Virus record (IMG/VR): IMGVR_UViG_3300042560_001323 | Location: 62,001 to 126,000 of that record | Direction: 5' to 3' (one strand) | Length of the DNA stretch: 64,000 nt | The notes under the pieces: model-generated | Database searches by the model: none | Seen by the model: the letters and a program-made list of their open reading frames with translations, nothing else | Told to the model about the DNA's origin: nothing | Shown here: positions 53,895-54,048 of the stretch, piece by piece | Layout of the letters: the number at the start of each line of letters is the position of its first letter | Position numbering within the stretch: the stretch's first letter is position 1 | Position numbers and translations under genes: made by a program

Positions 53895-54048
53895 AGCGAT
53901 GTGCTATTACGCCAAAAGAAACTGCATTTTTCCTCGCCACATCACTTACATATGCCACCTCTAAGGCCCGACATTACTAAGCATTTCGCAGTCTTGGTGC
54001 ATTTTCTACTCTTTAAAGGGTGGCTGCTTCTAAGCCAACCTTTCGCTG
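53895..54048 (-). ncRNA. RNA resembling the 23S rRNA GTPase-associated centre (H43-H44) with a 95-nt insertion
   Basis: AGGTTGGCTTAGAAGCAGCCACCCTTTAAAGAGT [95 nt] GCGTAATAGC, closed by AGCGA/TCGCT. Confidence 0.8.

Follow-up and report, generated by a model that had tools for sequence, protein, structure and literature searches.

A phage RNA gene resembling the GTPase-associated centre of 23S rRNA, its family and its place among tRNA genes

The locus and its parts

We analysed a stretch of 64,000 nucleotides (nt) of IMG/VR virus record IMGVR_UViG_3300042560_001323 (positions 62,001 to 126,000 of that record; hereafter the window) and, within it, an RNA gene on the minus strand that resembles the GTPase-associated centre (GAC) of bacterial 23S ribosomal RNA (rRNA). 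This GAC-like RNA gene is about 155 nt long and occupies 53892..54050 (-), limits that were taken from its match to R1, a covariance model of phage relatives described below. The window element was confirmed as a member of a large, unannotated phage RNA family. The original prediction, which had been made from the letters of the window alone, gave the position and description of the element correctly to within one base, position 54048 lying one base outside the closing helix.

Read 5' to 3' on the minus strand, the gene runs through AGCGA-AAGG, a hairpin with the loop UUAGAAG, CCCUUUAAAGAGU, a block of 95 nt, and GCGUAAUAGCACA-UCGCU. In the numbering of E. coli 23S rRNA, which we use for residues throughout, 54042-54008 corresponds to 1056-1090 and 53912-53900 to 1091-1103. 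The hairpin (54017..54042; 23S 1056-1081) is like helix 43 (H43), carries the 1067 loop and is supported by an exact match of 32 nt to annotated 23S rRNA (E=4e-6 in a search against 2.3 Gb); its key residues are U1060 at 54038, A1067 at 54031 and G1071-C1072 at 54027-54026. It is followed by the junction UUAAA (54012..54016; 1082-1086) and by GAGU (54008..54011; 1087-1090), the 5' strand of helix 44 (H44), with A1088 at 54010 and U1090 at 54008. The tip and 3' strand of H44 (53900..53912; 1091-1103; GC-GUAAUA-GC-ACA) include A1095 at 53908 and, at 53902, a family-specific A1101. The likeness to H43 and H44 that had been recognised, with the loops UUAGAA and GUAAUA retained, is borne out: both loops are present along with the 32-nt match. 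The residues that form the signature of the GAC tertiary fold, namely U1060-A1088, G1071/C1072 and the 1082:1086 pair, are also found in the window copy.

The core is closed by a helix between AGCGA (54043..54047, equivalent to 23S 1051-1055) and its complement UCGCU (53895..53899). As had been predicted, this helix pairs and is not rRNA sequence; it has 5 base pairs (bp) in the window, where the family usually has 8-10 bp. The rRNA-like sequence is interrupted between U1090 and G1091 by the 95-nt insert (54007-53913), and GCGUAAUAGC follows directly at 53912-53903. The insert is made up of a structured domain of 91 nt (53917..54007) and a linker, UUUG (53913..53916), that leads to G1091. It starts after U1090 (54008), ends in G (53913) and forms a stem of its own in the minimum-free-energy fold (AGAAA/UUUCU and UGCA/UGCA), and its exact removal would restore contiguous rRNA sequence, so that each of these features of the original prediction agrees with the sequence.

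No Rfam model of large-subunit (LSU) rRNA matched in the window, either at the gathering threshold or at E<=10, and the flanks of the element are not rRNA; two true 23S loci (L119 and L113) were detected by the same tool. The element was not found to be continuous with the rest of LSU rRNA (RF02541), and no family in a search of Rfam 15 covered it, again at the gathering threshold or at E<=10.

The prediction had also placed the element between transfer RNA (tRNA) genes, which is where it lies. In minus-strand order, a terminator-like site (54713-54699) is followed by a tRNA-Arg(UCU) gene (54311..54595), a hydrophobic open reading frame (ORF) of 46 amino acids without a Pfam match (54120-54260), the GAC-like RNA gene, a tRNA-Asp(GUC) gene (53749..53823), a weak terminator-like hairpin (53735..53749) and a stronger terminator-like site (53538-53513), all three terminator-like sites coming from a consensus scan only. 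The tRNA-Asp gene was found by both ARAGORN and the Rfam tRNA model. The tRNA-Arg gene was missed by ARAGORN at its default settings and was recovered with the intron option; its anticodon loop is interrupted by a 209-nt group I intron (Rfam Intron_gpI, 54570-54376, 55.2 bits); the joined exons give tRNA-Arg(tct).

The phage family, its fold and its insert

The family was collected by searching IMG/VR for exact occurrences of the H43 string, which returned at least 119 loci, and by a second scan, anchored on the 3' signature, which found further ones. Almost none of the H43-string loci have rRNA flanks, and nearly all have a variable block right after GAGU. The 3' signature of the family is GCGUAAYAGC-A-CAC, where rRNA has U at 1101, followed by a strand that is complementary to the 5' flank and is different in every lineage. 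We built model R1 from an alignment (A2) of 30 diverse phage members from which the window was left out, and R1 nevertheless matched the window element over its full length (model positions 1-181, 105.7 bits, E=1.6e-31). At least 90 matches at E<=1e-10 were obtained among the loci L001-L100, and at least 76 at E<=1e-5 among L120-L203 together with phages pf16 and XacN1 (L324/L325). The original prediction had left the definition of a family to database searches; by covariance model, the census comes to at least about 160 loci over the two IMG/VR scans, cultured phages among them.

In cultured phages, R1 confirmed six of six candidate loci (pf16, UNO-G1W1, Pseudomonas phage Milchi, Aeromonas 4_4572, Xanthomonas phage XacN1 and GAP32), with E values of 1.2e-25 to 3e-39. 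The match in Vibrio jumbo phage 2.275.O was weaker (E=1.1e-11), and Pectobacterium CBB, Serratia BF, Erwinia, Yersinia and other Xanthomonas giant phages were matched by BLAST only. The carriers span T4-like, Otagovirus-type, Rak2-like giant and other jumbo phages with very different hosts. None of the GenBank records of cultured carrier phages that we checked has an RNA annotation at the element locus. In UNO-G1W1 (L331 1490-1681) and Milchi (L329 1496-1665), short 'hypothetical protein' ORFs have been called on the opposite strand over the RNA and are probably spurious. About 70 of 84 viral matches proved to be real members; in a 15-mer scan of bacterial and archaeal genomes only 5 of 100 were real, the rest being mostly chance, and the family is therefore essentially viral.

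A 409-kb viral contig (L128) has R1 matches at 3768-4085 and 4830-4942 (-), the second much weaker at 28.5 bits. Within 2 kb of the GAC-like element and tRNA-Met of locus L057 lie a twister-P5 ribozyme (12687-12763) and a tmRNA gene (13276-13663, plus strand). Five loci (L011, L029, L052, L053 and L069) share only the 19-nt string of the H43 hairpin (20 bits) and have different surroundings that are conserved among themselves, CCUACGAUUGGCUUAGAAGCAGCCAAAGCAUCGUGG...; these may represent an unrelated element with the same hairpin. A second R1 match in the window (23062-23116(-), 12.9 bits, E=0.012) is an H43-like hairpin without H44, located inside an ORF, and is probably due to chance.

We examined selection on the fold in two ways. 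RNAalifold applied to A2 recovered the closing helix, both parts of H43, the basal stem of the insert and the tip of H44, with compensatory changes in 16 of 23 pairs. Covariation was then assessed formally on a model-based alignment of 76 distinct sequences, with 500 shuffles and slid controls for comparison. Standard pairs made up 92.9% of cells against 69.5% in shuffles, a level that none of the 500 reached; double-sided changes numbered 419 against 129; and the covariation score was 0.549, compared with 0.136 for shuffles and at most 0.166 for slid controls. Compensatory change affected all 8 pairs of the closing helix and all 4 of the insert basal stem. The 1082:1086 pair and the alternatives for the linker were counted by script, apart from these pair statistics. 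Mimicry of the GAC in sequence and fold, and selection on that fold, are thus demonstrated. The suggestion that selection acts on the fold, and that the element is not a passive scrap of rRNA, is upheld by covariation of the closing helix, the base of H43 and 1082:1086 across the family; the significant 23S match and the fold-conserving homologs dispose of the concern that either might be lacking.

Since each scan fixed one half of the molecule, we judged the conservation of either half solely from the copies that had been collected through the opposite half. Among the 54 copies informative for the 5' half, G1055, G1059, U1060, C1079, A1084, A1085, A1088 and U1090 are invariant, and G1071 and C1072 are kept in all aligned copies. 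The pairs 1057:1081 and 1058:1080 co-vary, the latter with four pair types, and 1082:1086 occurs as U-A, C-G and A-U. Position 1061 is variable, and residue 1067 is A in only 43 of these 54 unbiased copies. For the 3' half (69 copies), G1091, C1092, G1093, A1098, G1099 and A1101 are invariant, U1094 and A1095 are each present in 68, and each position of the UUUG linker is 93-99% conserved; 1096 is A or G, and 1097 can be any base. The A at 1101, which the window shares, is thus found in 69 of 69 copies of a set that is unbiased for this position. Gly130-Thr131 of L11 hydrogen-bond to the U1060-A1088 pair (PMC2175356), and the compact GAC domain is locked by docking of the H43 and H44 loops (PMC2952862). 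The pattern of conservation favours an RNA that is kept for the GAC fold and the uL11 surface and is relaxed at residues that face translation factors and thiopeptides. Because A1067 is retained in only part of the family and 1096 and 1097 drift, a reader of the fold or of the uL11 surface would be favoured over a factor or a thiostrepton-type reader.

All array-borne copies carry A1101 where rRNA has U, and all are interrupted by an insert at one and the same site. In the 113 unique elements this site is without exception that between U1090 and G1091, and the length of the insert ranges from 29 to 313 nt (the few longer calls are artefacts of the finder); UUUG forms its end in 101 of them, and its last base is G in 108. 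In 33 of the 113 the insert contains a GNRA-type hairpin with UAAGG after it, and some members have a second, optional hairpin after A1077. The window belongs to a subclass with L061, L059, L086, L004, L007 and L054, in which two invariant strands, GUGCGAAAUGC and AGUGAUGUG, lie opposite each other with co-varying stems on both sides. These facing strands and co-varying stems argue that the insert of this subclass is a selected domain.

The nature of the insert bears on the original suggestion that it might be an intron. We found no match between the insert and Rfam, including the group I model RF00028, at E<=10; the genuine intron about 300 nt upstream scored 55.2 bits in the same search. The prediction that the insert is too short for a complete group I intron is correct, as it has 95 nt, short of the roughly 200 nt or more needed for self-splicing, and does not match the catalytic core P3-P9. 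A U before the insert and a G at its end are found in the window (54008 and 53913) and in the family (U1090 in 54/54, terminal G in 108/113), and structural explanations exist for both. A group I intron was rejected in view of the lack of an RF00028 match, the co-varying basal stem, the conserved UUUG and sizes that start at 29 nt, all at the exact same site. Trans-splicing by the neighbouring ribozyme, which had been offered as a more speculative option, fares no better: that intron is the cis intron of tRNA-Arg(UCU), and a search with RF00028 found no group I intron in 12 other element loci. The insert is therefore a constant, structured part of the array-borne family and not a recognisable intron.

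Two further candidates for the insert were rejected. As a miniature of other 23S helices (the H41/H42 kink-turn, H45-46 or the sarcin-ricin loop) it received no support, the best match of the insert profile to real 23S rRNA having E=3.3; local alignments yielded no more than a 7-mer with p=0.43 and a single match, with p=0.02, that is absent in the closest relatives, and the apparent likeness to H41/H42 is either not significant or not shared by relatives. No tRNAs are nested in inserts, and the overlaps that appeared were abutting tRNAs or finder artefacts.

Placement in a tRNA operon is a property of the family. Around the 113 unique elements, 642 tRNA genes lie on the same strand and a single one on the opposite strand; 45 of the elements have a same-strand tRNA within 30 nt, often only 2-15 nt away. 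In pf16 the element occupies the gap between tRNA-Asn and tRNA-Pro, and in XacN1 (L325) the element (1492-1725) ends at a strong intrinsic terminator. The XacN1 element also stands directly after a 2'-5' RNA ligase gene (826-1476), a single case in which adjacency may be coincidence.

The element has several variants. One copy in a tRNA-Leu array (L018:1054-1178(-)) combines a 41-nt insert, UUUG and A1101 with a longer, rRNA-like helix 42 (H42) on both sides, and possibly represents a stage in evolution between rRNA and the phage family. In three others (L099:1757-1830(+), L044 and L116), from loci without LSU rRNA, the GAC module is contiguous and free of an insert, has U1101 and is closed by a private helix; the module is followed by a hairpin, a Shine-Dalgarno sequence about 45 nt downstream and the AUG of a small hydrophobic ORF, and two of the three copies have C at 1095. 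The 1095 loop has been lost in L115, and L102 and Pd_22F are plain contiguous scraps of 23S rRNA. Because the site of the insert, the UUUG linker and A1101 are common derived features of the array-borne family, we infer that it was captured from rRNA once and then passed from phage to phage, in preference to several independent acquisitions from host rDNA.

The window itself derives from a T4-like cyanomyovirus; it encodes gp32, gp59, a baseplate protein, ribonucleotide reductase, PhoH and ThyX, the last being closest to that of Synechococcus phages B23 and B3. The ThyX ORF (26545-28281(-)) contains an inserted LAGLIDADG-like domain, and its Synechococcus phage relatives align in two pieces with 46% coverage; the insertion looks like an intein or something similar. 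At a distance of 2.8 kb downstream, the element is followed by a gene for a PTH2-type peptidyl-tRNA hydrolase (50664-51071(-), Pfam E=1.7e-32), which forms a small translation-related cluster with tRNA-Ile(UAU) (48366-48438). Among the best 25 of 38 protein families of the window there are no genes for stalk or other ribosomal proteins.

Proposed function and alternatives

We propose that the locus encodes a stable non-coding RNA, which would be transcribed and processed together with the phage tRNAs. As the elements sit on the same strand as tRNAs and close to them, release of the RNA as a stable species by the tRNA-processing machinery seems most likely. Its core adopts the fold of the three-way junction that helices 42-44 make in 23S rRNA (nt 1051-1108; the part of the GAC to which uL11 binds), closed by its own short helix in place of the continuation into the ribosome and with a lineage-specific structured domain branching from H44. 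With U1090 paired to A1101, the two parts of H44 would stay stacked on the continuous 3' strand, the insert would branch from the 5' strand, and the 4-nt linker would return from the insert to G1091. By molecular mimicry in trans, such an RNA could offer the surface for a GAC-binding factor off the ribosome. Host uL11 is the likeliest partner; its C-terminal domain would read the folded domain and the U1060-A1088 pair. Capture or redirection of uL11, or of another GAC reader, during infection might then weaken uL11-dependent activation of RelA or the functions of the stalk, or might shield the ribosomal GAC. Phages are known to encode the stalk proteins bL12 and uL11 (PMC6375957, PMC13157829).

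Binding of uL11 and the physiological outcome are inferred, and a decoy or titration appears to be the most plausible class of mechanism. We give roughly even chances to the proposal that the RNA mimics an rRNA domain in trans and so captures uL11, or some other reader of the GAC, away from the ribosome. A fuller version of it is somewhat less probable, namely that the RNA forms an off-ribosome particle with host uL11 and possibly other stalk or GAC factors, which rewires stalk signalling or neutralises a GAC-directed attack; the signalling in question may be that of RelA and the stringent response, of translational GTPases or of termination.

Several observations weigh against capture of uL11 as we have described it. 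uL11 is mostly ribosome-bound and is present at about 10^4-10^5 copies per cell, and simple titration within one infection cycle would therefore be quantitatively demanding. Binding of uL11 also offers no explanation for the insert, which is obligatory, or for the invariant UUUG linker. To our knowledge, A1095 is not needed for the C-terminal domain of uL11, and its conservation in 68 of 69 copies without an obvious uL11 reason hints at an additional or different partner. As for the structure, the window copy folded as a single sequence is no more stable than shuffles (z=-0.38), a result that is uninformative, and the linker could alternatively pair with C1102/A1103 and remodel H44. Covariation cannot decide on that pairing because C1102 and A1103 never vary.

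In the strongest alternative, the RNA would act against a toxin, a defence effector or an antibiotic directed at the GAC, as a decoy or as a competing substrate. It would present the H43/H44 cleft, chiefly the 1095 loop, and thereby absorb or inhibit an enzyme or ligand that otherwise inactivates ribosomes. Tre23, a natural antibacterial toxin, ADP-ribosylates 23S H44 at 1095-1098 and blocks the GTPase of EF-G, and thiopeptides bind the same cleft (PMC8661411); G1093, U1094, A1095 and A1098 are 99-100% conserved in the phage RNA. Its location in tRNA arrays would also fit, as phage tRNAs are documented tools of counter-defence against systems that attack tRNAs (PMC10264068, PMC11464382, PMC11555353). 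However, 1096 and 1097 vary freely even though they lie inside the mapped Tre23 footprint, A1067 is not fixed, and the very different hosts across the family would call for an equally widespread toxin. The RNA would also have to compete with thousands of ribosomes. We know of no anti-phage system that targets the GAC, and on balance we consider a toxin decoy possible but rather improbable.

The insert, which uL11 capture leaves unexplained, could itself be the functional part, with the GAC fold as a stable and possibly uL11-chaperoned chassis that presents it to another RNA or protein. Its presence at the same site in every array-borne copy, the hairpin and UAAGG shared by 33 of 113 inserts, and the conserved strands and co-varying stems of the window's subclass, which persist while the closing helices differ completely, all speak for such an arrangement. 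On the other hand, inserts of 29-313 nt fall into several apparently unrelated classes and it is the GAC core that stays constant, near-identity to rRNA at the positions that contact uL11 is more than a mere scaffold would require, and the variant typified by L099 has no insert at all. We judge this explanation unlikely.

Still less likely, in our estimation, is a cis-acting element, that is, a uL11-responsive leader or a signal for processing or stability, comparable to ribosomal-protein leaders. In L099, L044 and L116 the insert-less variant precedes the Shine-Dalgarno sequence and AUG of a small ORF by about 45 nt, a layout that resembles a uL11-responsive 5' leader, and the GAP32 copy is intergenic, just upstream of a coding sequence. 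Most copies, by contrast, are flanked by tRNA genes only, often 2-15 nt off, and have no downstream ORF; a terminator directly follows the XacN1 copy; and the window element does not occupy the 5' untranslated region of a gene that it could regulate, the next gene downstream being tRNA-Asp.

Very little probability attaches to excision of the insert, by self-splicing, a protein pathway or RNase III-type cleavage, to leave a contiguous or two-piece mini-GAC RNA of about 60 nt. Its constant position after U1090 (54/54), the terminal G (108/113), the restoration of rRNA sequence upon exact removal and the ligase gene adjoining the XacN1 copy would agree with excision, but none of the inserts fits a ribozyme model, whether group I or another, the shortest have only 29 nt, a consistent internal guide sequence is lacking, U1090 and the terminal G are accounted for structurally by the U1090-A1101 pair and the conserved linker, and basal stems of only 4-5 bp are poor substrates for RNase III. 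Finally, scraps of rDNA do occur (Pd_22F and L102), but a passive host fragment or a chimeric assembly with host rDNA, which the original prediction had named as a risk, is refuted here by family-wide covariation, non-rRNA flanks, the private co-varying closing helix, A1101, insert and linker, and by at least about 160 related loci that include complete genomes of cultured phages.

Significance and comparison with known systems

We found no description of a phage mimic of an rRNA domain in open-access papers and bioRxiv, and the parts of the IMG/VR structured-RNA survey available to us report no rRNA-like candidate. If our proposal is correct, this would be the first virus-encoded mimic of an rRNA domain and would add a new class of passengers other than tRNAs to the tRNA operons of phages. 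The RNA would join the short list of translation parts encoded by viruses (tRNAs, tmRNA and a few ribosomal proteins) as the first that copies a functional centre of rRNA. The large, unannotated family points to an unrecognised phage route of interference with the host translation machinery, and may expose a conflict between phage and host at the ribosomal stalk, be it through the stringent response, through GTPase factors or through GAC-directed toxins. The family is widespread; complete reference genomes either have no annotation for it or show small ORFs in its place. Its function is directly testable, as culturable pairs such as pf16 and Pseudomonas putida carry the element. The family also amounts to a natural mutagenesis of the GAC fold, in which residues for folding and uL11 are invariant, in contrast to the ribosome-only residues A1067, A1096 and U1097, and it reveals two sites in the GAC that are permissive for insertion, 1077/1078 and 1090/1091.

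Like group I introns and the intervening sequences of rRNA, the insert interrupts an rRNA-like helix, with U before it and G at its end; unlike group I introns, it lacks a catalytic core and is 29-313 nt long. The known intervening sequences of bacterial 23S rRNA lie in helices 25 and 45, not in H44.

Among phage tRNA clusters, a precedent is that of T4, which includes two stable RNAs that are not tRNAs, species 1 and 2 (rnaC/rnaD), co-transcribed with the tRNAs and of unknown function. The likeness consists in their being small stable RNAs co-transcribed with phage tRNAs; we know of no resemblance of species 1 or 2 to rRNA. T4 did not turn up in similarity searches with the element, and no direct comparison with species 1 and 2 was made. 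With phage tRNAs themselves (PMC10264068, PMC11464382, PMC11555353) the GAC-like RNA shares compartment, strand and tRNA-like spacing, and both are phage copies of a host translation RNA. It is no decoder, however, and copies a piece of rRNA. The bL12 and uL11 encoded by viruses (PMC6375957, PMC13157829) concern the same target feature, the L7/L12 stalk, but are proteins that join or replace parts of the host ribosome and not RNA mimics.

In its proposed mode of action the RNA resembles the leaders of ribosomal-protein mRNAs. The L10 leader (Rfam RF00557) is an example of an autoregulatory leader that mimics rRNA. The principle is the same, in that an rRNA site is imitated off the ribosome by an RNA that traps free ribosomal protein (PMC3616713 for the class). 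These leaders are cis-acting 5' untranslated regions of bacterial ribosomal-protein operons with only partial structural resemblance to rRNA, whereas the phage gene mostly has no ORF to regulate and is nearly identical to rRNA in sequence; only the insert-less variant typified by L099 has a leader-like position. A search of the window for Rfam ribosomal-protein leaders at E<=10 gave no match.

There remains the comparison with the GAC of 23S rRNA itself (H42-H44, E. coli 1051-1108). The two have near-identical H43 and H44, are both built as a three-way junction, co-vary alike at 1057:1081, 1058:1080 and 1082:1086, and both conserve U1060, A1088, G1071, C1072 and A1095. They differ in that the phage element stands alone in a tRNA array and not within an rRNA gene; H42 is replaced by a private helix of 5-10 bp, so that the kink-turn and uL10 site are absent; and A1101 takes the place of U1101, with a structured insert and UUUG between 1090 and 1091. 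In the phage RNA, moreover, A1067, A1096 and U1097 are free to vary.

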